Source of the DNA: Paragordius varius
Taxonomy: Eukaryota; Animalia; Nematomorpha
DNA: 64,000 nucleotides
Direction of reading: 5' to 3'
Assembly (NCBI GenBank): GCA_964247055.1
Contig: OZ176052.1
Span: forward strand, 9,300,001 to 9,364,000
The position numbers and the translations under genes are program-made. The notes beneath the pieces are model-generated. The model did no database searches. It had not been told where the DNA came from and worked only from the letters and a program-made list of their open reading frames with translations. Below, in pieces: positions 7,439 to 55,975 of the stretch (within the stretch, counting starts at the first letter, position 1; every line of letters begins with the position of its first letter).

Positions 7439-10400
7439 TCAGTCTTTATGCACATCTACAAGACTATAGCTAATTTTCAACCCTTCTGAGGGGAAGTTTA
7501 TTCCGTTTTTCTTGAATTTAGTGTTAACAGAATTAAGCTCTCGATGTATATCACATTCGGCTGGTGTAAACTTGATCCCTGACATTAACATTATAGCTAA
7601 ACCGACTTTTATTTCAAGCAAGGCGAATCTGAGCCCAATACAATTTCGTGGGCCTGCCCCAAAGGGCATATATTTGTAATCGTTGTCTAATCTAAAGTTT
7701 AAATATATATTCATTATAACCGTCAATTTATTTGAAATTTATGAAAACAGTTTGAAAAAATTTACTGTGTTTTTAGGTTCTTAAAACGTTCCGGATTAAA
7801 TTGGTCTGGGTTTTCCCATAAGCCTGGATCTTTGTGTAACGCCAAAATGGGGATAATAACTGGAGTTCCTTTTTTAATTAATAAATTATTGGTGCCAGGA
7901 ATTACATAATCTTGAGAGGCGGTCCTGTCGAAAAATACAATTGGTGGATACAACCGTAAAACTTCTCTAACTACCATGTCCATATATCGTAAACTACTAA
8001 CAGCATCATAGCTAAACCCTAAGTTATCTTCATCGCTTTCTAAAACAAAAATAAAAATGTTAAGTAATTAGTTTTTCTTTGATAAAGTATAATTTTTAAT
8101 TTTTAAGTAAATGTAATATTTTTTAAATTTTAAGAGAGAACAAAAGATAAAATAATTCTCATAACCTTCTGGCTCACAATAAATTTCTCGATGACATCCT
8201 AATTCGATTATAACTTCATTCCGTAATTTCTCTTGCACATCGGGGTACCAAGCCAACGTTCTCGTTATCCAACTCAAAGCATTAGCTGTCGATTCATAAC
8301 CAGCTATGAAAAACAGGAGGGCATTAGACACATATTCTTCCGTCGATAGACCTACAAATTCGGATTCTTTATTAATCGACCCATGGGTTTCTGTTAAGCC
8401 ATTGTTTTTATGCGCAAACACACTGTGAGACATAATATAAAATAACAAATTTATGATTTAAATGAAAAACAATAATTTTCTCCATAGCTTCCGAGCCATT
8501 TTATAAATATATTGTATTCCAAAATCAATTTTAATTCTTAAGGGCTTGCTTGCATTATAAAAAATTATTGAGGATTAAATTAACAAATTTTAAGTACCCC
8601 GAATCATCAGAACTATTTTTGTCATCTTGATCTTCATGCATTGTGAACTCGTCGGTAACAGTTAATGTCTGTGAGATTTTTCCCGCATTGCCTTTCTTAT
8701 CATATTGATCCAAAAATGCTTTGTTTGAATCAATCAATGTTTGAAGGTAATCATTTCTTAACCATATTGAATCAAATTAATAATAAACTATAAATTAAAA
8801 TTGTATGCCTATGTTTTATCCCAATTTAACATTTTTAGACTCATACCCATATATGAATCGATCTAATTTTATTTTAGGCAGCAAATAGTTACTTTGCAAA
8901 AAATTTGTATTATCACAATAATTAGCCAAAATTGCCATATCTGCACACATTAGGTTCATCAAATAATATATTCTGTAAATATATATTATAAATTATTTTT
9001 CAAAATTAAAACCGTCTTGAATTTCATGATCAACTCATATAAGGGAAATTTATTAGACTTTAGAATTGAGTAAAAAATCCGTTGTTACCAGAAAGAAATC
9101 TAACGTCTTAATTATATGATTAAAATTTTTAAACGCTTTATCTTTTATACACCGAAATTATGCAACATTTTGTTGAGGAGCATTTTATGGTCTAATGCAC
9201 TTCGCGGATTGTATTAAACACATGAGAATGTAATACTTTTTGTATATTTCAATGTAAGATATCAGGAACCTTAGCATATTTAAAAAAATATTTCCCAATC
9301 AAATTAAAGGCAAAATAATAGGCAGCAAATAGTTACTTTGCAAAAAATTTGTATTATCACAATAATTAGCCAAAATTGCCATATCTGCACACATTAGGTT
9401 CATCAAATAATATATTCTGTAAATATATATTATAAATTATTTTTCAAAATTAAAACCGTCTTGAATTTCATGATCAACTCATATAAGGGAAATTTATTAG
9501 ACCCTAGAATTGAGTAAAAAATCCGTTGTTACCAGAAAGAAATCTAACGTCTTAATTATATGATTAAAATTTTTAAACGCTTTATCTTTTATACACCGAA
9601 ATTATGCAACATTTTGTTGAGGAGCATTTTATGGTCTAATGCACTTCGCGGATTGTATTAAACACATGAGAATGTAATACTTTTTGTATATTTCAATGTA
9701 AGATATCAGGAACCTTAGCATATTTAAAAAAATATTTCCCAATCAAATTAAAGGCAAAATAATATAATATTGGCCAATACACCTGTAAAACCATAAGATA
9801 ATATTATCCTTATTATTACATTATTATATATTAAGAATTATATTTTATAGCCTTTTAACCTTCTAAAGCAGAGTATCGACAAACCTATTTAAAATTTATA
9901 TGATTCCTTTACAATAAATCTAATAAGGATTGCGACCGGAAAGGTCTTTTGTTTAGGTCCCAAGCAGGTCTTTAAGTCAAAAATAATTGTGATATATTTT
10001 CTGTAAATCTAATTATGTCTAATTTTAATAAAATTAACTATAATAAATTATCTTAAGGTTTTATTTATAATCAAAATAATTTTAAAAATCTTTTTGGCTC
10101 CCAAACTCTAAAAGTGTGTGTGCCAGTTTCATTAAAAAGTACCGATTCCTTAAAAACATAACATTTATACTAAACTAAGCAATCATAAGTGGTTGATTCA
10201 AAAGAACAATACATTATGCATTTAAATGGTTGCTTTTTCACACTATAGTTGGGCAATTGGCAACACATTAGTGTGTGGAAAAAACAACAAAATGTTGAAT
10301 AAACAATTTTTTCCTTTCTTTTTTCCATACACTATGTTGCAAATTGCCAAACTCGTGTGAGAAAAGCAACCATTAAAATGCATACTGTAATTTATTATTT

Positions 10401-12429
10401 CATATTATACTTGTGATAAATACACCTTTATTTCAACATATACCTCACAATATTTAATTGTTGCCGTTTGGAAACGGTTTCCTCCACAATATGTGCAAAA
10501 AATTCCATTGATTCTTCATCAATAATGGATACATTCCATAATTTCAGTAAGGGTGCAAGAAAGGGGAATAATCCAACAACAGCAAATATTGGGGAATCGA
10601 CTTCAAAGTTAAAAACTCTTTTAGCATGCCTTAAATGAAAAAAAAGCATTATTAATATATTGGTGTTTCCCTACCTGATTGATTTACATTTATGTTAGAT
10701 GTATAGATAAAATTTCATGTGGTTGATTATTTTTAAACGCGGTCACTGCCACAGTCATGTGTCTTTATTACCGGCCACAAGGCATAGTATAAGATATTAT
10801 ATATAAATATATAAGGATTGTAAACTAAAACCACAACGGTTCCAGATATAAAAGAACCAATTAAATTATTCTATTAAGAGTTTAAATACTGATGTTAGAA
10901 TACAAACACAATTGATTTTTTTCCATTAATAAAACCAAAAGAAATGCATTTTCATGTAAAAATAAGAATTGTGTCCTAAGGCATTTGTTTTTATAGTTAA
11001 ATAAACATAATTGTGTAAAATATTAATGGTTTTTGCCTAATTTTATATCATAATATAAATTATTTATTTTGATATTAGGGCTATGAAATAAATTTAAATA
11101 TATATTAATATATATAGTAACAGAACTTTTGTGTATATTGGACCGTATAAAAAAGTTTCACAAAAAGTAATTTTTTAATTTCTGATATTTTGTCACAAAG
11201 TGAGCATCGGAATGCAAATTTTTTATTTTAAATGAAATTGGATACGGTAAAAAGCGCATGGCTTGGATGTTTTTTCCGCTGCCGCATTTTTAGATCAAAA
11301 ATTTCGGCGAGCCGTGTTCTAAATATATATGGGCATCATATATAATTTATTGGATTTCAAACATAAAACTGCAGAATGAAAGTTGTAACAATTTTTTCTC
11401 GTTCTTGTTATTTGAATAGCCATATTTAGAAGAAAGTGTCCAAGAATTATCAACTTTAATAAAATTTTATGAGCATGTTTTTGCAAATTATGGATTATAA
11501 TTTTTTGCGGGCCGCAATCAAACTCTGAGAGGACCCCATGCGGCCCACGAGTTGACCACGCCTGTTTTAGATATATTCGTTTGATTTAATATCCTAATAT
11601 ATATTGATTTTTAAATTTACTTGATAGGAATAGAAAATTTATAGGGAATAAATGTTCAAATGTTATAATAATTTTGGCAGACGAATAGAGCAATGGGTAA
11701 AAAAAGAAAAAAAATCAAAAAATTCGAAAACGATCAAGCAAATAATTCATAAAATAAATTTAAAACCAAATTACATAAAATATGTGAGCAAGAGGTTTTG
11801 TATTTATATTACTTCGCAAAAGCACTGTCATGTTCTTCAAACGAATTTATATCAAGACCAAACGCCGTTGATGATATGACATCCATTGTAAAACACCCAA
11901 ATAAATCTTTGGTATCGCATGTAACTTCCATTCTATCAACCAATCTACTTTTCATATGATTTAACATTTGCTGGGCACATTTATAAATTAAGGGATACAT
12001 ATTAGTTTTCATTTTATAGGTGGTGAAAGTGGGTATTATCGTTCGTCTAGCCCATCTCCATTCGTCATCCGTGGTTGTGAAAACAGATTTGGCAAAATAT
12101 TTGCTACTTAATGGAAATATTCTTCGATTAGGAAATCTGGAAAAACTTTTGATCAATATATCTTTGAGAATAAGGGGATCACTTATTACGATTGCTAATG
12201 ATTGCCCTTCTGCCACAGCATATACCCGCCCTAACTTCCTTAGTGCGTCCAGAAAAGTTTTTTGAAAACCCCAAATATAAATCCATAAAACCGTCCCAAA
12301 AAATGGAATGCAAATGGGATGTTTAAATCCTGACTTGTGCAATCTCCAAATAGGACGTGTCCCATAATATATTAGCCATATGAATATTGCGGTTAAAATA
12401 CATTTTATGTATAAACCAAAGTTGTCCAT
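7439..12429 (-). CDS. Cytochrome P450, CYP3 clan (CYP3A/CYP5-like), 6 exons, ~581 aa
   Basis: Exons 12429-11813, 10629-10444, 8756-8598, 8422-8166, 8039-7766, 7691-7439, all GT-AG and phase-compatible (1746 nt). N-terminal membrane anchor, C-helix WRWAR, I-helix [11 protein letters not shown]-helix EVLR, PERF, heme motif [10 protein letters not shown]. Confidence 0.93.
8875..9764. repeat. 444-bp near-perfect direct tandem duplication in CYP intron 2
   Basis: 8875-9320 is repeated at 9319-9764. The only difference I saw is gacTTtag vs gacCCtag. Confidence 0.95.
10212..10387. mobile_element. ~180-bp TA-flanked MITE (Tc1/mariner-like ends) in CYP intron 2
   Basis: TIR ta|cattatgcatttaaatggttgctttttcacac ... 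gtgtgagaaaagcaaccattaaaatgcatactg|ta. A homologous copy lies at ~43596-43772. The terminal motif is shared with the element at 753-1817. Confidence 0.8.
11250..11564. mobile_element. hAT-Charlie-like MITE fragment in CYP intron 1
   Basis: Right end gcggcccacgagttgaccacgcctg is typical of Charlie-type TIRs. The interior (tttgcaaattatggatt..tttttgcgggccgc) is similar, inverted, to ~54800-54870. Left end not found. Confidence 0.55.
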
Positions 12430-13196: not shown

Positions 13197-15999
13197 ATGG
13201 TAATATTAGGGTTAACATCTTTGCTTTCCACGTTGGCTTGGTGTACGTTTATCCTTTTCGTATTTTATTGTGCCATTCCTGTTTACAAGGTACGTCGGAG
13301 TGGTTTGAAACATCCTCCAACATTTCCTTTGATAGGGACAACCATATGGGTCATTTTGTATGGCATACAATACTGTTATATGGAGTGGATTAAGCGATAT
13401 GGACACCTGTTTGTCATTATGGAAGGACCGAGAAAAATTTTGGTTGTTAGCGATCCCCAAATGTTAAAAGATGTTTTGGTTAAAAGTTTTTCCATCTTTC
13501 CGAATCGCCGTGTCCTACGTATCGGTAATACACTCTTGTTAAAATCTGTGTTCACGTCGGAGGATGAGGAATGGAGAGATGTAAGACGTATTCTCATACC
13601 AACATTCACAAGCTACAAAATGAAAACTAACATGTTCCCTCTCATGTACAAATGCTCGAGGCAAATGGTGACACATTTTATGGACAAATTGGAGGCAATA
13701 AATGGTACAACAAAATCAAAGAAAGTCACCATAGATAGCAAAGCAATATTCGGCTGTCTAACAATGGATGTGATAGCATCAACAGCGTTTGGGCTTGATT
13801 TAGACTCCTATCAAGATGCAAATAACGAATTCGTTGTGTAAGTTTGTTTATAATGTTGAATAGCCTTCGGTTTTTATACCGTTATTTGTTAGTTTCTAAC
13901 ATTTTTAGGGTTTAAATTGAGAAACCATTTTTTTGGAATATATGATGTCAATTTCAAATTGACAAGATTGTAAAAATTTTAATTATATTTTTTAAAGTAT
14001 ATTTATACCATACGCTATAGACAAGCTAGAAAAGTGTTTGAATTTGAAATCGATTCTCCTTTATTCATTTTGTGGAATATGTTTCCTTTCATAGTGCCAG
14101 TATTTAAATTGTTGAACATAAGTATAACTGACGAGTCAAGTTTAAATTTCTTCATCAATGTTATTGAATCAACAGTAGCGGAAAGAAAGTCTCGGAATAT
14201 TAAAAGGTAAATTTTTTAAATGTCTTTTAATAAATACATGCATTTACCATATAATATTGATATCATTAATGATACCCAAAATTAAATATTATTAATTTTT
14301 ACACCAAACTTTTTCACAACGATTATAATAGTCAAATTTTTTGGAAATTTTTGTTTGACAAGAGCAATAACTGTTGCTCATTTTTGAAGTGTTATACGAA
14401 TTTGCATATTCTCAATTTAAAAATAAAGGGATGATTTGATATTTTGAAATATAAGTTTAGTTTAAAATAAATACCATTTTTAGACATGATTACCTCCAAT
14501 TACTAATTGATTGTTCGGCAGAAAACGATGACCACAAAAATGAAGATGATGCCTTTAAACAAAAAGAAAACTATCAAAAGGTTAGCAATGGATGTCCCAT
14601 GTCCAAAAAAGTTTTACAGGTGGATTTGGAAAAATATATAATGCATGAAGACACTGAACAAAGTTTAAACAGCGGAAATAAAACTGATAATTCTAAGATT
14701 AACCCTAGCATAGTGCATAAAGATGACAAAACTATTATGAAATTAACAAGAGAACAATATGTAGCTAATGCCTTCCTCTTTTTCGTAGCGGGTTATGAAA
14801 CAACGGCAAACGCTTTAAGTTGGATAACTAACACTCTTGCCTGGTATCCTAGAGTACAAGAACGTCTTAGGGAAGAAGTCTTGATAATGTGGAATAGAAA
14901 AAATGGACACAAAAAATTTGGTAAATATTTTTATCATATATATCAATAAAATAAATTGGAGAAAGGAGTGACATAGCTGATATATTAGATTGACCACATT
15001 GAGTCCGTAAAAAAATTTGCGAACTTATTAAAATTGTCTTGAATCATGTATAAAAATACTGAAAAGAATGTTATAAAAAATGGTGTGTTAATATCAGGGA
15101 CATAAGGCAATTATATAATTTTATCGATTTAGATTACCTTTCAGAAAAATCGGATATAACTTATGAGGACGTTTTAAGCCTTAAATATTTGGATCTGGTG
15201 GTCAAAGAGGTCATGAGATTATACCCTCCTGTGACGTTGATAGACAGAGTCGCGTCCCACGATTATATTTTAGACGGGGAAGTTTTTGTGGAAAAGGGAA
15301 CCATCATACAAATTCCAATTTATGCTATGCATAGAGATCCAACAATTTGGGCAGATCCCGATGACTTTCGACCTGAACGCTTTGAAGATGGGTAATATTA
15401 AAATTGATTTAAATAACGGCTAATTTAAATTAATCAATTACGAATGCTTACGGCCAGACTGATACCTCACTTTAACTAACATCAAATGGTTGATCATATG
15501 TTCTCATAAAGTTAATTACCAGAACCTAAGTGCTAAAAATGATTTTATGTAACAAAGAATATTTTTGACCAAATTTTATATTCGACCAAGTAACTGTTAT
15601 TATAACCATCGAAACTAATTGAGTGTTTTTAAAGGTTGGATTTGTTATATTATCTACAGTTAATTTGAAACTGTCCCATCTAATCGGGTTTTTGGTTCTT
15701 TACAATATTTACTAATTTTGTATTTTCCATTAAAAATAATTTTTCGGCTCTTATTTAGGCTTAAAGATGAAGAGTACAGTTATATGCCGTTTGGTTTTGG
15801 CCCTAGGAACTGTATTGGTTTGAGGTTTGCTCTATTGGAAATAAAATTATCCTTGATTCTACTGTTGTTAAGCGGAATCCGGTTTTCGGTTGCACAGGGA
15901 GATGTGGTTAAAGACAAGACACCCTATAACACCCAATTCAAAAAGAATGGTATTCATTTCCCAGCGCATGGATTGAAAGTTTCATATGAACTTATATGA
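13197..15999 (+). CDS. Cytochrome P450, CYP3 clan, paralog of the minus-strand CYP, 5 exons, ~587 aa
   Basis: Exons 13197-13837, 14021-14206, 14484-14920, 15133 (or 15145)-15391, 15759-15999, phase-compatible (1764 nt). [33 protein letters not shown]. Confidence 0.93.
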
Positions 16000-22151: not shown

Positions 22152-25100
22152 ATGAAAAAGGGCAATAAATTTTATCAGCGTGATAAAGCCACTGAGGCTA
22201 GATTAAAGATGGTAAAAAAGTCCAGACCCATTAGGTAAATTAAAAATTATATTTTTTTAGGAATAAAAAGGGTAAAATTTTAAAGGAAGCCCCCTTTCAA
22301 TCAAAACTTGCTCCTGGTACTCAAGCTCGAATTCAACCAAATCGCAAATGGTTCGGTAAGTTATTAACAATGTTTAGGAAATACTAAAACAATAAGTCAG
22401 GATACTTTGCAAAAATTTAGAGAAGACATTACTAAAGCCATGAGTGATCCATATCAAATAATAATGACACCCTCAAAACTTCCTACTACCTTGTTACATG
22501 CGAGTTCTAAAGTATAAATTATTTTATTTTAGTTTTCACGTCCACAAATTTTACAAGTTAGTAAATTTCAAGATGTTTTTGGGAAAAAGGCTACACGGAA
22601 AAAACCCAACATTAATTTTTTGGATGTCGAGGTATTTATTTTTTACATACGCTAGGATTTTGCAACAAGTATTAGGGATAAAACGGAATCATTTGAAAAT
22701 GCCGATTCAATAGACAAAGAAGTAAATTCCATGTCTTCTGAATTGAATGATTTAGTGTCCGATACTATATTCAACAAAGGCCAGTCCAAACGCATTTGGA
22801 ATGAATTATATAAGGTTTTTTTAGAATATTTCAATGTTTTACATAGTTTTAAAAGTTATCAAATAAGTAAATTGTAAATTATAGAAATTTATCATTTATG
22901 TAGTTTATATTGAGTCTTAGTAATACATATCAAATAAAATTTGTCTCCAGTGGCCCTTCAAAAAACATGTTATAAAATAAATAGGCATTATTGATTGTGG
23001 TGTTATGCGCATTTTCAATGAAAAAAATGGTTTATTAAAATGTTTGTTGAATATTATTAATATTAGATAATATAAATGAAAACGCGTATAAATGATTTTT
23101 AAAATTAATAGTTAATTTTCAATTAAATAATCCTATTTAAGTTTTAAATACATTTACCACACATTATTTTAATATTATATATTTTTTAAATGTTTTCTTT
23201 CTCTTGCAAAAGTTTTACAAATATAATCGATTAGATATTTATTAAATAAATTAACTATTAATTTTTTAAAAATCATCTATATGCGATATATAAAAATGCA
23301 TGATTTTTTACTTTTTTATTAGCTATAATTAAAAATGATCTTAAAAAGGGTCATAATGCGAATAATTAACCATTCAATTTTCGCGAAAATAATCTCCCAT
23401 ATTCAGGAATGATATGTAAATAACCATGATAGTTTTATTTAGTGATAACTAAAAGCCTTAATCAATATTGCGATTCATGTTTTTAAAAAACCATTTATAC
23501 CATTTTTGATGGTTTATGCAAAAATGTTAACGATTCATTAAAAAATATATTTGCATTTGTTGTGATTTTACGACATTAAAACCTAAATCCATCAAAATAT
23601 TTTTTACATATGATAAAAATCGTTATTCTAATTATTAATTATTTTAATACAAATCAGTTACAATATTTTTATTGTTAAAAATAATTTAAAAAATCTGAAT
23701 TAAGTGAAAGTCTATAGAATATTATTCCAAAAATTAAAGCTTAAAATACCTCATGGAAAAGCCGTAAAAAATATTTCTCGAGTTATCTAGCCAATTTATT
23801 TAATACTTAGCATATGATTTATGATTTATTTCAACATTTTCATAATAAATCACATAAGAGAATATTTGTATCCTAATGGCTCTTGTTTTTTATTTTTTCA
23901 ATTATTCTTATAAAAATATAATTACTTTTCTTATTTATTTTGTCAAATCTCATATTATTTCACTCCAAAGGTTATAGATTCATCGGATGTTTTGATTCAA
24001 GTATTGGATGGACGAGATCCCATGGGAACTAGATCACAGCATATTGAAAACTTTTTACGGAAACATAAACCGCATAAACATTTGATATTCCTGTTAAATA
24101 AATGTGACCTTATACCACCATGGTGTTCTAAACGCTGGGTATCCCATCTATCCAAAGAATATCCTACCTTGGCTTACAAAGCATCCATTAACCAATGTTT
24201 TGGCAAGGGTTCCTTAATCAATGTTTTGCGGCAATTCGCAAAGGTATAGATTCGGTTAAAAATGGAGATAAATGTAATTTTTTGGTATCTTTGATTAGAG
24301 AAAAAAATCAAAGTTTTTCAGAATTTGATAAAATATTTAGAATACCTGGTTTCCAATTTTTGTATTTTTTGGATTTAAAGCAAAATACTAGCGCCTATAT
24401 TGTAATGTAAAATTTCTCAATCAAAAATTTCTATAAAACAGACTCCTAAACTTTATGAAAGTTAGCCCAATTATAACTTGCTACCCAAATTCTTTCCAAA
24501 AAAGATTATTTATGTATAACATTGTTTTTAATATTTATTAATAGCTTCACCCAGAACGTAAGCAAATTAGTGTTGGTTTTTTCGGATATCCCAATGTTGG
24601 AAAGAGTTCCATAATTAATAGTTTGAAGGCCAAAAAGGTATGTCAAGTGGCTCCAACGCCTGGTCACACCAAGGTAAAACATATTTTTTACAATAATATT
24701 ATATCATATATTTAAAGATATGTAATCGTATCATTCAATATGTTATAAATTTAAATAAAATTCTTTTTATATTATGATTAGAAATATTTAGTCCGTTATT
24801 AACATTAAAATTTATAACTAATTAAGTTATATGGTTTACCTTAATATTTAGGTCTGGCAATATATTACGCTAATGAACCGAATATATTTAATTGATTGTC
24901 CCGGTGTTGTATATCCAGAAAATAATTCAGAATCCGATCTAATCCTTAAAGGAGTGGTATAACAAAATCATTTTTAATTTTTGTATTCCAAAAAACATAT
25001 TTCATATGCGTAATATATAGGTTCGAGTTGAAAATGTTAAAGATGCTCACAATCACATCCAAAATCTTATAGATAAAATGCCCAATCCCTCATACCTACT

Positions 25101-25527
25101 TAATACATATGACTTAAATTTATATTACAACAATGGTGTTAAACCTTTGCTGCCTATCAAGCAACAAGGAAAAATAGATCATGACCAATCTCTAAATGAC
25201 ATTAAAACAATAGAAACTAAAGCTGAAACAATAGGAACTAAAGCTGAAGTCGTTAATTTAAATGAAAATATTAACATAGAAGGAGATGAGGAAATATTAC
25301 GCAATAAAAATGTTGAGCGAATTGAATCAGGCAAACTCTTAGAATGTTTGGCTTTACGCATGGGTAAATTGTTGAAAGCCGGTGAACCTGACATTTGTAC
25401 GGCCGCAAAAATTATATTGTATGATTGGCAAAGGGGAAAAATCCCATACTTTACTATGCCACCCAAGGAGGTTAACGAAACTGACAAATGTGATGATAAT
25501 ATTTCCAATGTGGAAACAATGGCATGA
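22152..25527 (+). CDS. GNL2: Nucleolar GTP-binding protein 2 (circularly permuted GTPase, NOG2), 9 exons, ~527 aa
   Basis: Exons 22152-22234, 22261-22355, 22378-22511, 22533-22631, 22656-22814, 23971-24243, 24545-24673, 24852-24956, 25021-25527 (1584 nt). Motifs [30 protein letters not shown]4 NKCD, G1 GYPNVGKS, G3 [24 protein letters not shown]. An additional upstream exon is possible. Confidence 0.95.
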
Positions 25528-27005: not shown

Positions 27006-27297
27006 GATATTCTAATTCTATAATTTCCTTTATATTCAGCATCAGGCCTATAAATAATTACAAGCTAATATACTGTTTAGGGACCTCGATATTATGCTGT
27101 TTATAAAAATATTGTGCCTGTTTTTGATTATTCCGATTTATTTTGGTTTGAGTTTTTTCCTCTTCGGGTAAATCATCCTCCCACAATAAAATTTTCGCAC
27201 TCATCAATCCCATTAAAGATAAACTCGAAAAGGCATATAGAATAGAATACCATGTCTTTTTGTTTTGAGCCTTGGTTACTAAATCACGTCTTAACAT
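27006..27297 (-). CDS. Hypothetical protein with one hydrophobic segment, probably the 5' part of a multi-exon gene
   Basis: ORF MLRRDLVTKAQNKKTWYSILYAFSSLSLMGLMSAKILLWEDDLPEEEK. A 26-nt GT-AG intron (27073-27048) continues the frame into PDAEYKGNYRIRIS. Further coding-looking patches on the minus strand at ~26380-26450 and ~25690-25770 could not be joined with confidence. Confidence 0.45.
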
Positions 27298-27351
27298 TTT
27301 CAGGTAAAATCCACATGATATATTTGTAAATTATAGTTGGGTAAATTTGAA

Positions 27352-30300
27352 ATGGAAAAAATTTTAGACAACAAAAAAGATATGCTAAAAAATCAAGAAA
27401 AAATATTGTTAAATTTGATTGCCGAAATCATTCTGTTAAATGAAGACATATCGATGGATGAAGATTTAGCCACCTTAATTCTAGAGGTAAACTTTAGTGA
27501 TATTCATAGGGTAAATGTGTAAATGCTTTAAACATCCGAGATCGTAACGATATTATCAGGGTATACTTTTGTTTTATATTAAGGTTATGAATTTGTATTC
27601 GAAAATCAAAAAAAAATCTTGCAAATCATTCGTTGCTCCAAAAATTATCTGCCATCATACTCAAAATAAATTTATCGAAGTTGCCGGTTTTTATCAAAGG
27701 TTATGCCGGAATAAAATTAGAAAAAAACAAAGCTTATCAAAAGTAATCTAACAGTAATATTAAGATTAAGAATGATCTCCAGCGCAGGTTAGATTTGGAT
27801 AGAAAGGAGTATAGTAATGAGGTTTTAATTATTTTTTTAATATTATGACTTATTTATATATATTGCATTCCGATATTTTTACTATTTATTCATTCATAAA
27901 TTAGAGGATTAACAAAGTCCCTATATATTTAATTAAATAAGGATGGTTTTTAATGGTAAGGATTAAATTATTTATTAATCAAATTGATTAGATATAATAT
28001 AACTGTACAGAACATGTTATGCATATCTTCTAGATATTTTCACGTAAAAAGTGGATTATAAAAAACGTATTTTCTAATTTTTATTGAGTTATTATCCTTA
28101 AGCGGTGTTAGATATTTTTTTAATTTTTAGGGATATGTTTCATAATAATTAACATTCGGATATACAACTACATAGCAGTCTTTTGATTTAAATGGGGTCG
28201 TTTGCCTCAGGCCTGTAAAATAAATACTTCAAAATTATGGAGGAAATTGAAACCATGGCAAAAGTTTTCACTTATATAATCTTAATGAACTGAAATATAA
28301 AAAAAATCAAAAATACTTGATATTTCTCTTTTAAGGTAAAACTTAAACGTAAAAATTCAATATGATATGTCTGCCTTAATATAAATACAAAATAAACTAC
28401 CTTTTCTTTTTCTATTAATGATATATGTGATTTAAATAAAAAATTAGCTTTCAGCTTTAAATAAAATTAAATAAACACCACATTTTGCAAAAATGTTGTT
28501 AATGGCGTCAAAGTAGTTGGATATGAAACTTTTTTTTCAAAACTAAATTTATTTTGATATTTCGGCTTTATATAATTTTTATTAGGATAGAAGCATAAAT
28601 TTAAATTGAGACCGTTTCTTTCGGTAATTGTAAAAATATCAACTTAAATATGGTCTGGAGTATTTAGAAACCCCACTTTGAATCGAAGTGTTAATTCTTT
28701 ACATATTTTTAAACTAAATTATTATTATATTATGGACAGATTTAAAAAAGGTTATATTACATTTTATTTTTTTACACAAACAATTTTAATGTGAATTATA
28801 TTAAATATAACCAATATTCTGTTTTTAAACGTGGATATTAATTGTTTTAAAGATTTTAATTTTACTTGTTTTCAAAAAATAAATTTAGGAAACAACACCT
28901 TCACCGTTAGATTTAGAATTATCACACAATACGGATGAAGATATTTACAAAGAAATTAGCGCTTATGAAATACTTAATGACCAATTAGAAAATGATTTTA
29001 ATGCTTTGATTCATGGTCTGTCTACACCATTAGGTATGTTTAATAATCTTTAATTTAACTTAATAAATTATTTATTGGAATATTTTTTGATTATGTATTG
29101 GAAAAAATGTATAAATATTCTAATATGCAAAGATATTTGTGAAGAATTATTGAAATTATGGGTAAATAACATATGAGATTGATCTTCGGATCAAATTTTT
29201 ATTTTTAAACAATGTGAAAACATGCTTTTTCATGGTTTATCCGTTAAGGAAATTCTAATTCTATAAAAGTTGTTTTGTTAGAACCCTATGTTAGACAAAA
29301 TGAGTTATAGCTTTTTTTTCATAACTAAACCAAATTATTTTAATTTCAAAATTCATTCGGTATATATTAGTTTTATATCGTTATTTGTTATTTAAAACAT
29401 TCTATAGACTTATTAACGACCTATACGAATAAGTTAATACCCTCATTTGCACCAAAACAATTATTACAACATAATGATGATCTCACCTCCAATTATTACG
29501 ACAGCGATACCACATTAACCAAAATTAATTCCCTTGATATGCCAATGCTTTCTAAACCATTATTTTTGCCCAAACAGATTGAAACGATGGTTGGATCAAA
29601 ATTTGAACACATACTAAAAGATTTAATTACTTGTGATATCCACGATAGCCATATAAATGAAAACCATAATTTGATGCTTACAAATTTTCTTTTGGACAAA
29701 ATAGATTCTGTGATGGACGATTCTTTTTGCACTCCGGTATATTTGGACAATGTCGTTAAACGGACACAATTGAATATGGGTGAAAAAATATTTTCCACAA
29801 ACGAACGAGTAAAGTTGAAAAAAATATTGGTTTAATATAATTATATTAATGGTTTAAAAATTATGGGTAACTAAATTTAATATCAAAAAATGTGTTTGAA
29901 TTAAATTTCATCCTAGATACTGGTCTCATTTTTTTCGAATATGTTTATAGAAAACTTTGACAGAAGATTTTAAAATTGGGCCACCTATTTATAATGCAAC
30001 AAACCCGGCCTATTATGCCCAAATATATTATTCACCATTAAGCTTCAATTCTGTCGGCTTTTCACCCGCAAAAAACACCGCTATAAGTAAGGATTTTGAA
30101 TTATATGCCCTTTTAAGTATCCCTCATTCATAATCAAGGTTAATAATTTAATTTAACAATAATAAAATACAATTTTTTTTATTTTATATTTTTAATATAT
30201 TAGCGCAACCTGGATCTAATTATGGTTATAACCCCCAAATTATATTAGCTAATCGCGTCAATGTATTTGCCAATTATAACACAACGCCATATTTTAGGTT

Positions 30301-40676: not shown

Positions 40677-42390
40677 TTAAACGTTATAACGAAAACGAGT
40701 TTCGAAACCACAAAGGTTCGAAATCGTCAATATCTTTATCCGATTCCATTTTAAGTTTAAGTAACTTTGGGATTGTTTAATATAATGAATAAAATAAATG
40801 GAAAAATATACTGTATAAAATACCAATTTGGATATGTCATCTGATTTTTGGGGAATCCGAACCACCAAAAAAACATTGAGATAATGGGATCCCCTACCAA
40901 TTTTTTGAATGTCATTTTCCACTTCTAAGGCCTATACTACCATAATATCATAATTTTTGTAATTTTAAGTAAAATATATAAATTGTATAATATTGTGTTT
41001 TACCTCCCAACAACAGGTAACCCAAGTTTCGCATGTCGGCCAATCATTGTAAAATCCCAGCATGTAATAAAGAATCTGTAAACCAGCTTCTCTAATCTAC
41101 AATTTAAAAACAAGCGCTTACTGGCACACTGATCTTCAGTTTTTGACCTAAAATGCATTAATTATGGGCATGAAAGATATGTACTAATACACTGGAATAT
41201 TAATATTAAAATGGATTATAAAACTCTAAAATTATTTAATTTTTATTTTTTCGCTATTTATATTTTTTATCAATATCGTATTTAATTGCGTAAGAAGTCC
41301 CGATACTTTTAATATAATAACTAAAAATAAATAACACACATCCTTATTATTAAGAATGACCTTGACCTTAATTAATATATTTAGTGTGGTGACAGTTACC
41401 CTCACGCCAAAGTTTACAATTCATTTTTATGAAATGTCTTAACCATGAAATATATATATAAATATACAGTTTTTATCAAAAATTTATTTTTTTCGTTAAA
41501 TGGGTATAAATATTTGGTAAAGAATGGCAAAAACAAGAGCTCTATGGTAATTCTTATACTTTTTTGATGACTATGATATTGTTAATACCATACCATAGAG
41601 CTCTTGTTTTTTCCATTCTTTTTATACCCATTTAACGAAAAAAAATAAATTTTTGATAAAATATAGGATACGTGACTCTATGTATATACTAACATGGCAA
41701 TCCCCAGGAATCTGAAAAGAGGGTTGTTTTATTGCTTGTTCTGACAACTAATAATTGTTCATCGCATGTATACAACATAACGCTTAAAACAACTTCTATT
41801 CCCCATCGACACGTATACTGTTTAATAGAGTCTTTTAATCGGTTTATTAAGCAAGGATACTCTTGATGCTATAATTTAAGCTTCATATTACTTTTAGGAT
41901 GCAAAACCTATTGGGCACTTTGCTATCAGGATCTTCTGGAAATAAAATAAGGCGATGTTCCTCTAATCTAAGTTTGATTTCGGTTTCATGTTTTTGTTCA
42001 AAATAATCAAGAATGCACTAAATTATTAAAAATTGAATTTACCTATAAATATTCATCACTAAATATCATACATTACTTTTTAGTTTAAAACAGTTTAATA
42101 AATATTTAAGACCACATTAATAAAATTTGCCCATTTTGAGTTAACAATTATTGTGAAAAATGCGTTACTCCTATGCTTAATTAAATTTTGTACAATATAA
42201 TATGTTGCGGTACCTCAATAAATTTAGCCGGTCGTATTTTTCTTCTCCAAGATGCTTGTAAATAAACAATGACAAAATCCACGTAAAAATCCGGACACCA
42301 TAAATTTATTTGATCAGCTTTTGTAGCATTATTGGCTGAATCTTTATTATATGTATAATCTTCATCCTCATATTGATTGTCTTTATTCAT
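40677..42390 (-). CDS. NUDT17-like Nudix-fold protein with a degenerate Nudix box, ~261 aa (3' end tentative)
   Basis: Exons 42390-42214, 42017-41892, 41868-41694, 41147-41122, 41096-41004, 40924-40824, 40764-40677, phase-compatible, with 23- and 25-nt introns. IKLRLEEHRLIL, RWGIEVVLSVMLYTCDEQLLVVR, WGLPCQKLKISVPIREAGLQILYYMLGF and WVTCCWE align in register with recalled NUDT17 ([70 protein letters not shown]). Confidence 0.7.
41466..41665. repeat. Long near-perfect hairpin (collapsed MITE) in an intron of the NUDT17-like gene
   Basis: About 75-bp arms (ttttatcaaaaatttattttttcgttaaatgggtataaa..aagaatgg..aaaacaagagctctatggta and its reverse complement at ~41591-41661) around a ~40-nt loop. 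Confidence 0.85.
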
Positions 42391-47074: not shown

Positions 47075-51156
<4,082 letters not shown>

Positions 51157-51469: not shown

Positions 51470-54400
51470 CTAATTTTCTTGAACCAATTTTTCGCCCATT
51501 TCAATGATAAAACTATTTTTTGGATCGGAGTTAAGACGACTAGATGATGATTCTTTGGTAAAGGTCGTGTATTGATATTTATTTCCATCGATAAAACCAT
51601 TGATTTGGTTATTGGGAGATGAATTATTATTATTATTATAGTGATTGGTAAACGATTTTACGATAGGATAAGTTATGGCAGTTTGTTGTGATGCAGCATT
51701 ACAACAGGACTTTTCATATTCTGATAGCGTAGGATACAGTATACCATTACCGACAACCGGTTCAGACTTGTTGGTGGGTAGGGGCCATGTCCACATATTT
51801 TTACCAAATACCTGACGAAAATTACGGCAAAATGTCTTGAGATTAAATGCATCTTTCATGGAGACAGCAATCATTTCTGCGGGTTCTTGCGTACGTATGC
51901 CGGCTCGGTATTCTTGTATCTGTTGTTCATACATACAATTCCTAGCGTAAAAAAGTGGTACCCGGAAAGATTCTAAGGTTGTCCTATTTTTCCCAACCAA
52001 GTAACAATGATAAATTAGTAATGCCGCTAAACTAATCCCAAACATGAGTGCCACGAAAAATAGGAAAAGTACATTGAATCTGGGTGTAAATACAGCCCGT
52101 AAAACGGAATCAGGCATCATCGAATCACCCATGGTTGAATATTGGCTGGAAGATGCAGGATTGTTAAAATCGTCTGGAGCGACAGGATTATGTTCATTAA
52201 TTTCCACCGCGTCTAAAACAGCAGACGACGATAATTGAGCTGATGATGGTGGAGGAGCCGTTGTACTTGACCAAAATGACAGGAAATAGGGGAGGGTTGT
52301 GGCTATAAAAAGTTGCAAAAATATAAGTATATACCATTTTAATAAAACATTTTTTCCAATCACTTGGATTTTTACTTATATACTGTCATTTAGATACTTG
52401 TTTGGCAAATCAATCGATTAAAATTCATTTAGTTATTGAAGATGTTAAACTTGAAGTTCAAAATATCAATTATATTTTTTGCATAGATATTTATGAGTAC
52501 TAATATATTAAACAAAAAAACGCCAACAATTATTTTTCACCATCTAAACCTTAATATTCGATTATATTATTTCTCAAAGAAAATTACGGCCCATATAAAT
52601 ATTTTATAATTAGTTTAAGATGTATTTGTTAATATACCCAAAGGTTATAAGATTCTTCAATAACAAATTCTTTATTGGATATTGTTTACGCTGAAGTGTG
52701 ATTGTATTATTTATATTGCAATTATAATTCAGATAAAATTATATAAATTTATTGTGAATTTTCGATTACTACTAGTAATCTTTGTCAAACGTAAAAAAAT
52801 ATAATTAAGATATAAACTAAAATTTAAAGTATGATACCTTAGATTCGGTTGCCCTTCAAAACTTATATAAAACATTTTTCTCATAAAATGTAAAATATCA
52901 TGTATTATATTTTCCATTCTCAACTTTTTGAGAATCCGACTCAAAATTCTGGGCTCTTAAAACTATTTGATGAACATTAAGTGTGATATAATATCTACTG
53001 TAATGAAGGCTCGGACAAATATATAAAAATCAATAATCATCGGCAACTAAACTTAACATCATATAATTTTTATTTTTTCAAAGTTCTACTTAAATTCATG
53101 TATAAAAAACCAACACCCTAATGGTAGTTATTTATTTCAATTTCAAGTTTTAAACAGCAAATTGAAAATTATTACATTTAAATCAATATATGGAAAGTTC
53201 AATTAATTTAAAAAAATAATAATTAGTAAATCATAAAATTTATTATCTCGACATTTTTTATTCAGTTTTAGGATGATTAAAAAGTATGAGAAATAAATAT
53301 CGATTTAACACTTCGATTCAAATTGGGGTATCTAAATACCCCAGACAATATTTAAATTAAATTTTTTTAAAAACTACTAAAAGAAACGGTCCAAATTTAA
53401 ATTTATGCTTTTATCCTAATAAAAATTATATAAATAAGCCGAAATATCTAAATAAAATTTGGTTTTGAAAAAAAAGTTTCATATCAAACTACTTGGAGGC
53501 CATTTTTATTTTACAACATTTTTGTAAAATATCGTGTTTATTTGATTTTAACACTTCGATTCAAATTGGGGTATCTAAATACCCCAGACTAAATTGAAAT
53601 TGAAATTTTTAAAAAACTACTGAAGGAAACGGTCCCAATTTAAATTTATGCTTCTATCCTAATAAATATTATTTAAATATGCTAAAATATCTTGATAAAA
53701 TTTTGTTTTGAAAAAAAAGTTCCATCTCAAACTACTTCGACGCCATTTTTATTTTGCAAAAATTTAGCAAAATATCGTCTTCATTTAATTTTAAGGGTAA
53801 AACCAAAGCTTATTTTTATATAAATTACATCTAACATTGATAGAAATAGAAAAAGCGGTTTATTTTGTATTATTTTTTAATTTTACAATTTGACACATGT
53901 CATGTTGACTAAATTTTTACCTTTCAGTTTTAGCTCAAAATAAGTAATATCAAGTATTTTTGAATAAATATTTTTATATATTTTGGTTTATTAATGTTAT
54001 ATAAGTGCAAAATTTTGCGATGGTTTCGATTGCTTCCATACTTTATAAAGTATTTGATTTTAAACAGGCCTGGGGTATTTAACTACCCCAATTTGAATCG
54101 AAGGACTAAAATGAATGTGTTGTATCCAAGTGTTAAAGCAAAAATAAAAGCTAATTTTTTATTTATATCACATCTAACATTGATAGAAACAGAAAAAGGG
54201 GTTTATTTTGCTTTATTTTTAAATTAAGCTTGTGCCCACATGTCATGTTGACTAAATTATTACCTTGAGGTTTTACCTAAAAATAAGTAACATCAAATTT
54301 TTTCGAATGAAATTTTTTATATATTTTGATTCATTAATGTTATAAAAGTGCAAATTTTTGCCATGGTTTCAATCCATTCCATATTTTTTGAATTTTTTAA

Positions 54401-55975
54401 TTTTAAACAGGCCTGGGGTATCCAACTACCCCAATTTAAATCGAAGGACTGAAATGGATGTGTTGTATCCAAGTATTAAACCATATAATATAAATTTAAA
54501 AAAACATGTATAATATACACTTTAATTTTTTTATCTTAGATTGTGCATTAATTATTCCAAAGGGAATTATATTGAGGAAATTATTAGAACTAATTGAAAA
54601 CAGCCATAAATATTGTCTTAATCAAAAAATAAAATGGTTACCACAATATCCTTAATTTAAAAATATTAATTCAAATATCAATCGTTCACTCTGTTTTATA
54701 ATAAGTATGAAATGCAAGCATAACCTTGATTAGCGCCAAGCTTAAACTAAATAAAAGTCATATACCCTGTGATACAACTAAAACAATGTCCAAAAAGCGC
54801 CCCGCCCGCGAAAAATTTGAATCCATAATTTGCAAAAATATGTTCATGAAATTTTGGTAAATTAGATATTTCTAAAACAAATTTTTGAAGTAAGTCAATT
54901 GGCAATGAACCACTAAAAATGTTAATTGTATTTTAATTTTTACAGTCTTGTGTTTGAAATCAAATAAAATATTTATTATTGCCCATATATAATTCGGTTG
55001 CGGCCTGCGAAGCCATTTGAGTTGGACACCCCTAATCTAAAATATAAACTGCTACGACGCGTCAAAAATTAAACTGCCGTTTTGAAACCGAAAAATTACA
55101 ATTTAATATGCTCCCGTAAACTAATAATTATTATTGATTTTTACTATATTACATAATATTGTCAAGGTAAAAAACGCATTGATATTAATAATTAAAAAAA
55201 TTTAAAGCAAAAAGTAGAATTAAATTTTTATAAAATTGGCATTTTCGCAATTTTCAATACTACCTCCAGCAAACAGGCACAAACAAAGCCCGTAGAAGAG
55301 GAATAAAATGAATTGTTTGTAATTCCCGTACTGGACACAATTATTGACCCAAGGGCAATGATGATCCATTTTCAAAATGCATTTTCCACAAGCGGCACAA
55401 TGATGGGATCGATCAGGTTTTATGAGCTTGCAAATATCACAAAATCTGGGGCCACCTTCAAGTGTGCACATTTTTAGGGGTTGAATTTGAGAATCGGTGT
55501 AGGTAAAATTTATTCTATTCGATATATCATGTAAAACATTAGCAATTTGATTTTCTGACGTTGATGACTCCAATTTTGAGACGTCATCGATTGTGGCAAA
55601 ATAAATGGGTGGTATATCAAAATTTTCATGAAACTTTTTACGGATTTTCCATTTACCATTAAAGGTTACCATTAAATAAGCCCATAACATGCTGATAAAC
55701 AGTCCGTGAAAAACAATTATATAGAGAATATATGTGTTATTACCAATTTTTGAGGGAATATAAAGAGAATTTGGATGTTTCGTTTTAAGTGTATAAAAAC
55801 AAAATTGGATAATATATGCGAAATAGGACCAAATTAATATCAATAAAACAAAAAATACTGGAAACCATCGAATAATTCTTATACAAATATTATTAAAAAA
55901 TAGGTCCGAACGCTTATGAGCCGGCTTAGATTGAACATAGGTGGGCCTCGCAGTGTTTATAGAAAAACAACCCAT
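51470..55975 (-). CDS. DHHC palmitoyltransferase, ZDHHC2/15/20 family, 2 exons, ~514 aa
   Basis: Exons 55975-55264 and 52302-51470 (phase 1, 1545 nt). [36 protein letters not shown], junction [16 protein letters not shown], TTxE motif NRTTLE, four hydrophobic segments. Confidence 0.92.
53309..54475 (+). mobile_element. piggyBac-like MITE (outer copy) split by a nested copy of the same family
   Basis: TTAA|CACTTCGATTCAAATTGGGGTA at 53309. The 5' part runs to ~53547, resumes at 54137 and ends ATCC-AAGTA|TTAA at 54475. Confidence 0.85.
53552..54132 (+). mobile_element. piggyBac-like MITE (inner copy), 581 bp, TTAA TSD
   Basis: TTAA at 53548-53551 and 54133-54136, ends CACTT / AAGTG, and a subterminal inverted repeat CTTCGATTCAAATTGGGGTA / TACCCCAATTTGAATCGAAG offset by 24 bp at the right end only. 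Confidence 0.9.
54795..55034. mobile_element. hAT-Charlie-like MITE remnant in the ZDHHC intron
   Basis: Right end gcggcctgcgaagccatttgagttggacacccct, similar to the ends of 59402-59612. Confidence 0.5.

Follow-up and report, generated by a model that had tools for sequence, protein, structure and literature searches.

Conserved genes of the nematomorph Paragordius varius are interrupted by GT...AG segments, mostly 21-31 nt and at most 36 nt long, that are very probably genuine U2-type spliceosomal introns and that would form a discrete class beside introns of ~53-90 nt and others between a few hundred and a few thousand nucleotides. Short, medium and long introns often lie within one gene, and in the long genes that we examined the short ones lie towards the 5' end. 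Eleven such segments had been listed in a preliminary description of a 64,000-nt stretch of genomic DNA, here called the window (C3:9,300,001-9,364,000; 25% G+C). Each of the eleven runs from GTA to AG, and the lengths and strands given for them are correct. That the segments are removed from the RNA, and how they would be recognized there, we infer from the genome sequence.

Exon continuity in GNL2 and WDR5

Our model of the GNL2 gene has nine exons and encodes a protein of 527 amino acids (Table 1). Searches and alignments were run one exon at a time. In a search among 1.84 billion representative proteins, the top match for the 91-residue exon 6 was P0001, the 570-residue GNL2 of Gordionus sp. 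m RMFG-2023, a nematomorph, and in exons 2-4 of this one gene examined the Gordionus protein was clearly the best relative too. Local alignment of each exon with P0001 revealed that zero residues are gained or lost at the four micro-intron junctions, with residues 31 and 63 of the Gordionus protein corresponding to the codons that introns 1 and 2 interrupt. Similarly, an exon-by-exon scan with the Pfam profile NGP1NT identified collinear pieces in exons 2-4 between which the 22- and 21-nt segments do not fit. Retention of the 26- and 22-nt segments would shift the reading frame, and retention of the 21- and 24-nt segments would introduce in-frame TAA and TAG codons, respectively. The four GNL2 introns of 26, 22, 21 and 24 nt had been proposed previously from the sequence, together with the idea that their excision restores the conserved protein; the coordinates were right and both proposals are borne out by exons that abut on Gordionus GNL2 and on the NGP1NT profile. 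A search of the genome for a retrocopy of GNL2, which would be a DNA trace of its spliced mRNA, was negative.

The intron that follows the micro-introns in GNL2 is 1156 nt long, as had been described. It had also been cited as an example of kilobase introns filled with transposons, and this was overstated: the intron holds one MITE-like palindromic repeat of ~235 bp, which matches itself on the minus strand, and the remainder is unique sequence. More than 100 partial copies of this repeat are dispersed through the genome on both strands, with 68-96% identity, and a tandem cluster of it is present at C3:1140971-1142586.

We then turn to WDR5, in which the exons on either side of a 28-nt segment map up to residue 63 and from residue 65 of the human protein, with residue 64 encoded by the split codon, and the segment must therefore go. 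Keeping it would break the reading through a frameshift or a stop. The later WDR5 junctions in Table 1 were placed with the WDR5 protein for a guide, and we take them to be approximate.

Seven micro-introns beyond those of GNL2 had been proposed in the window. All are GT-AG and the 28-nt intron of WDR5 is exact on human WDR5, but the other six, at 27048-27764 and 41097-41891, are weaker candidates for which the evidence is open frames and coding bias. The sequences flanking them are mostly coding-like, scoring +0.19 to +0.50 bits/codon compared to -0.25 +/- 0.24 for intronic open reading frames. Neither Pfam nor homologues lent support to the genes at 27048-27830 or to the NUDT17-like exons. 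The segment at 41097..41121 is the weakest of the six because an alternative open reading frame reads straight through it.

Table 1. Exons, introns and repeat in the window. Positions are those of the window; coding scores are in bits/codon; residue numbers for GNL2 refer to Gordionus GNL2 (P0001).
Feature	Position	Strand	Details
GNL2 exon 1	22152..22234	+	ATG at 22152, ends in phase 2; residues 4-30; coding score +0.37
GNL2 intron 1	22235..22260	+	26 nt, GT-AG; residue 31 is the split codon between exon 1 (to residue 30) and exon 2 (from residue 32)
GNL2 exon 2	22261..22355	+	NGP1NT profile 10-38; residues 32-62
GNL2 intron 2	22356..22377	+	22 nt, GT-AG; split codon is residue 63, NGP1NT profile position 39
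GNL2 exon 3	22378..22511	+	NGP1NT profile 40-82; residues 64-107
GNL2 intron 3	22512..22532	+	21 nt, GT-AG, phase 0, in-frame TAA; flanks abut at 107/108
GNL2 exon 4	22533..22631	+	NGP1NT profile 88-118; residues 108-140
GNL2 intron 4	22632..22655	+	24 nt, GT-AG, phase 0, in-frame TAG; flanks abut at 140/141
GNL2 exon 5	22656..22814	+	residues 141-203
GNL2 intron 5	22815..23970	+	1156 nt, GT-AG; one unique junction solution, zero residues gained or lost
MITE-like palindromic dispersed repeat	23051..23285 (approximate ends)	.	inside GNL2 intron 5
GNL2 exon 6 (GTPase core)	23971..24243	+	79% identity to residues 204-294
GNL2 intron 6	24244..24544	+	301 nt, GT-AG; unique exact junction solution
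GNL2 exon 7	24545..24673	+	tblastn to residues 295-338; junctions by solver
GNL2 intron 7	24674..24851	+	178 nt, GT-AG; unique exact junction solution
GNL2 exon 8	24852..24956	+	97% identity to residues 338-373
GNL2 intron 8	24957..25020	+	64 nt, GT-AG; unique exact junction solution
GNL2 last exon	25021..25527	+	stop codon included; tblastn to P0001 and junction solver
Candidate intron, small minus-strand gene	27048..27073	-	26 nt, GT-AG; upstream exon +0.19, downstream exon 16 codons; evidence from ORFs
Candidate intron, unnamed small gene	27487..27509	+	23 nt, GT-AG; flanks +0.35, +0.44; evidence from ORFs
Candidate intron, same gene as 27487..27509	27561..27583	+	23 nt, GT-AG; 3' exon -0.04 (ambiguous); weak candidate
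Candidate intron, same gene as 27487..27509	27743..27764	+	22 nt, GT-AG; 3' flank +0.50, 5' exon ambiguous; weak candidate
Candidate intron, NUDT17-like gene	41097..41121	-	25 nt, GT-AG; downstream exon +0.05; weakest candidate
Candidate intron, NUDT17-like gene	41869..41891	-	23 nt, GT-AG, phase 0; flanks +0.24, +0.19; evidence from ORFs
WDR5 first coding exon	47182..47356	+	human WDR5 29-62, so last residue is 63
WDR5 intron 1	47357..47384	+	28 nt, GT-AG, phase 1; split codon is human WDR5 residue 64
WDR5 exon 2	47385..47458	+	human WDR5 65-86
Later WDR5 introns	47459-47808, 47899-48020, 48111-48339, 48480-48541	+	~350, 122, 229 and 62 nt; read from the sequence, approximate

Intron lengths in a homology-anchored sample

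An ab initio scan of the window that joined open reading frames, with and without a codon-bias filter, yielded no excess of GT-AG over decoy dinucleotides, because chance open frames in AT-rich DNA swamp the signal. The support therefore comes from homology-anchored junctions, and we extended these to the whole assembly (110.6 Mb in 44 contigs). Genome-wide Pfam searches with Cpn60_TCP1 and Ras provided exon-by-exon coordinates, from which nine CCT/HSP60 genes and twenty small-GTPase loci were fetched; nineteen of the GTPase loci entered a junction solver. The solver sought a GT...AG segment that keeps both frames, with zero profile positions added or removed between neighbouring exon matches. 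The boundaries proved specific. For close exon pairs, GT-AG gave an exact solution in 20 of 22 cases, compared to 1-5 of 22 for the same-composition decoys TG-GA, GA-TG and AG-GT. For distant pairs, GT-AG was exact in 48 of 61 and same-composition decoys in 3-4 of 61.

With the addition of in-frame introns hidden within single profile matches, and of GNL2 and WDR5, the sample came to 92 introns in 31 genes. The GTPase loci had been picked for closely spaced exon matches, and the length proportions are accordingly biased towards short introns: 20 introns are 21-26 nt long, 5 are 27-31 nt, a single one falls in the range of 32-36 nt (at 36 nt), none measures 37-52 nt, 14 measure 53-90 nt, one lies between 91 and 130 nt and 51 exceed 130 nt. 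Thus, three length groups can be distinguished in the sample, one of 21-36 nt (26 introns), a second of 53-90 nt (14 introns) and a third of mostly 130-2900 nt, with a gap at 37-52 nt. The nine CCT and HSP60 genes form an unbiased set. Here, only 1 of 41 solved introns is shorter than 32 nt, with one more of 36 nt, and most are 240-1200 nt long. A median intron below 30 nt, the mark of genome-wide miniaturization, is not found in the CCT/HSP60 genes, and in the biased sample 26 of 92 introns are 36 nt or shorter. Introns below 30 nt do occur at exon junctions of conserved genes, including GNL2, WDR5, RhoA, other small GTPases and a CCT subunit.

The short introns gather by gene. One small GTPase gene (G000:C5:5360900-5361950) contains five introns, all of 21-22 nt; two of these are in-frame and one of the two is stop-free. 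RhoA (G000:C5:8097400-8098400, minus strand) has one intron of 23 nt and one in-frame, stop-free GT-AG intron of 24 nt, and its three exons correspond to residues 1-51, 53-102 and 103-192 of 192-residue Rho proteins. Among the CCT introns, those shorter than 90 nt account for 5 of 11 at profile positions up to 70 and for 1 of 30 beyond (Fisher P = 0.003), and the micro-introns of GNL2 and WDR5 are likewise at the 5' end. There are exceptions, as in two GTPase genes where an intron of 23 or 31 nt lies 3' of a kilobase intron.

Splice signals, machinery and alternative readings

The 26 well-supported short introns have weak signals. At position +3, 18 have A and 8 have T; T is present at -3 in 21 of 26 and at -5 in 19 of 26; and the overall composition is 49% T, 32% A, 13% G and 6% C. 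A yTnAy branch-point motif was found in 19 of 26 short introns, and shuffled sequences contained it in 19.3 +/- 2.2, indicating no excess. The medium and long introns display the same weak 5' and 3' pattern. All classes thus appear to share minimal signals, namely A or T after the initial GT, a 3' end rich in T that closes with TAG, and a branch-point motif no stronger than expected from base composition.

Changes in U1, U2 and U6 snRNAs, U2AF and SF1 had been suggested as something to look for. We found all of these components present and ordinary-looking. The U2 snRNA (177.7 bits) has its GTAGTA intact and the U1 snRNA (124 bits) has an intact 5' end, ACTTACCTG; U1 and U2 are the RNAs whose recognition sequences we inspected. 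A U6 snRNA is present (114 bits), as are a collinear U2AF2 gene and SF1, recognized by its SF1-HH domain. Because the signals are the same in all classes, the machinery is present and U1 and U2 are unchanged, the likeliest mechanism would be ordinary splicing by intron definition, with a single spliceosome able to work across a very short span from the 5' splice site over the branch point to the 3' splice site. The earlier proposal that a single spliceosome handles both ultra-short and long introns is therefore one that the exact junctions, the shared weak signals and the canonical core machinery favour, as judged from the genome. Separately, snRNA genes and pseudogenes form big clusters at G000:C3:257000-527000 and G000:C6:565000-633000, with 46 matches for U2, many of them degenerate, and 17 for U1, and one high-scoring U1 copy (122 bits) has the 5' end ACTTACTTG in place of ACTTACCTG.

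We considered whether a subset of the short introns, those that are in-frame and stop-free like the 24-nt intron of RhoA, could be partly retained, with regulated or leaky retention producing small protein insertions. Lengths divisible by three are not depleted among the short introns (8 of 26), and three of these eight are stop-free, as such retention would allow. An early deficit of such lengths was dropped as an artefact of in-frame introns hidden within single profile matches. The insertions would, however, land in parts of Rho and Ras proteins where insertions and deletions are otherwise absent; in RhoA, keeping the intron would make an otherwise indel-free protein of 192 residues longer by 8. 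We consider partial retention of this subset improbable.

It is considerably harder to accept that the segments are removed by something other than the spliceosome, either as DNA, like the internal eliminated sequences (IES) of ciliates, or as RNA cut by an IRE1/tRNA-endonuclease-type system, like the XBP1 intron (23-26 nt). The length excised in ciliate IES and in the IRE1-spliced XBP1 intron is ~23-28 nt, the 21-31 nt range of our segments overlaps both, and programmed DNA elimination occurs in some nematodes. By contrast, IES have TA-bounded DNA ends and XBP1 is cleaved at sites defined by RNA hairpins, whereas the P. varius segments end in GT-AG, with TA-TA boundaries solving 6 of 22 short gaps where GT-AG solves 20. 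Furthermore, they carry the splice signals that the long introns of these genes also have, and the segments are found in many unrelated genes while IRE1 targets are single genes. Taken together, these features make removal by either route very unlikely.

Hardest of all to credit is that the segments are retained, the genes being pseudogenes or the segments small assembly insertions and the exon continuity a relic: the protein collection that we searched contains no transcript-derived or annotated protein of P. varius, which leaves room for this reading, but GNL2 is single copy in the genome, and so not a decaying duplicate, and is essential in other organisms; its exons are 60-97% identical to those of Gordionus with frames open throughout; every interruption is GT...AG while decoys fail; and interruptions of this kind are also seen in RhoA, in further small GTPases and in one CCT subunit. 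Word searches of the collection with Gordionus GNL2 and with the stop-free RhoA open reading frame that reads through the 24-nt intron recovered no P. varius protein and nothing above 88% identity. Spliceosomal removal thus stands as by far the best account of the segments.

Known short introns and other traits of the genome

Animal introns shorter than 30 nt have been reported only in myxobolid myxozoans and in Dicyema japonicum, and further cases were predicted (PMC13644364, Mol Biol Evol, September 2026). The known cases named in the preliminary description, dicyemids and some protists, therefore need to be supplemented: the dicyemids stand and the myxobolids have to be added (PMC13644364). 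As in the myxobolids Henneguya salminicola, Thelohanellus kitauei and Myxobolus rasmusseni, P. varius passes through a parasitic stage and has GT-AG introns of ~20-30 nt, with a 5' signal cut to approximately GTa, a branch-point motif that is not clear, canonical U2 and U2AF, and short introns adjoining short introns (PMC13644364). The two differ in that the genome-wide median in myxobolids is 22-27 nt, whereas the short class in P. varius is a minority in the unbiased set of CCT/HSP60 genes and coexists with the classes of 53-90 nt and several hundred nucleotides. Moreover, P. varius belongs to the Ecdysozoa and myxobolids to the Cnidaria. Dicyema japonicum, as cited in PMC13644364, is similarly a bilaterian parasite with GT-AG introns below 30 nt and reduced splice-site motifs; its genome is small and compacted and short introns dominate, unlike P. 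varius, in which repeat-bearing long introns are common in the same genes.

A canonical spliceosome likewise acts on introns of ~15-30 nt in ciliates (20-30 nt in Paramecium and 15-16 nt in Stentor) and in the Bigelowiella nucleomorph, but these are protists in which nearly all introns are tiny. In Paramecium, stop-free introns with lengths divisible by three are depleted; the short introns of P. varius differ in having no depletion of lengths divisible by three. Our literature search found no work joining Nematomorpha and short introns, and introns go unmentioned in a Gordionus genome report and in a comparative nematomorph preprint.

If our reading is true, P. varius would bring to three the independent animal lineages with spliceosomal introns below 30 nt, and would be the first of them among the ecdysozoans. 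Micro-introns beside 60-nt and kilobase introns with the same weak signals would then offer a natural system for studying how one spliceosome copes with a span of ~20 nt. Gene models of nematomorphs, and estimates of completeness and gene loss derived from them, may be wrong if annotation pipelines reject such introns. A wider and more doubtful proposal, which we offer tentatively, is that nematomorphs, or this lineage among them, evolved a discrete, 5'-biased class of micro-introns served by an ordinary spliceosome in a bilaterian genome of normal size that bears transposable elements, and that standard alignment and gene-finding tools deal badly with introns of 21-31 nt, such that part of the low BUSCO scores and of the reported loss of universal genes might be an annotation artefact.

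Several other traits of the assembly are worth recording. The G+C content of the window is similar to the 26.9% of the Gordionus genome (10.1101/2023.06.26.546503). A size of 200-300 Mb is reported for published nematomorph assemblies (10.1101/2024.06.11.598342), compared to the 110.6 Mb of this one. Contig C44 is a mitochondrial genome of 15,693 bp, in which the COX1 match (413 bits) contains six in-frame TGA codons. It has perfect palindromes with arms of up to 208 nt, most of them within long open reading frames read with genetic code 5 (invertebrate mitochondrial). Long perfect palindromes inside mitochondrial protein-coding genes are a nematomorph trait (PMC6649704), which the coding palindromes of C44 match. 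Combined with the Gordionus best hit for GNL2 and the similar G+C content, they make a gordiid nematomorph very likely from the sequence itself; a dicyemid or orthonectid origin and a myxozoan one were set aside in view of the palindromes and that hit. A tandem array of ~72-bp hairpin units is located at C44 6749-7451, just upstream of cox1.

Within the window, we noted three pieces of cytochrome P450 genes at 8068-8448 (minus strand), 11809-12429 (minus) and 13197-13841 (plus). Two of the three are N-terminal exons of more than 200 amino acids, on opposite strands and with 5' ends ~770 nt apart. Finally, matches to DHHC palmitoyltransferases are present in two long open frames, at 51470-52363 and 55220-55975, both on the minus strand, which may belong to a single gene as two exons or form a tandem pair.
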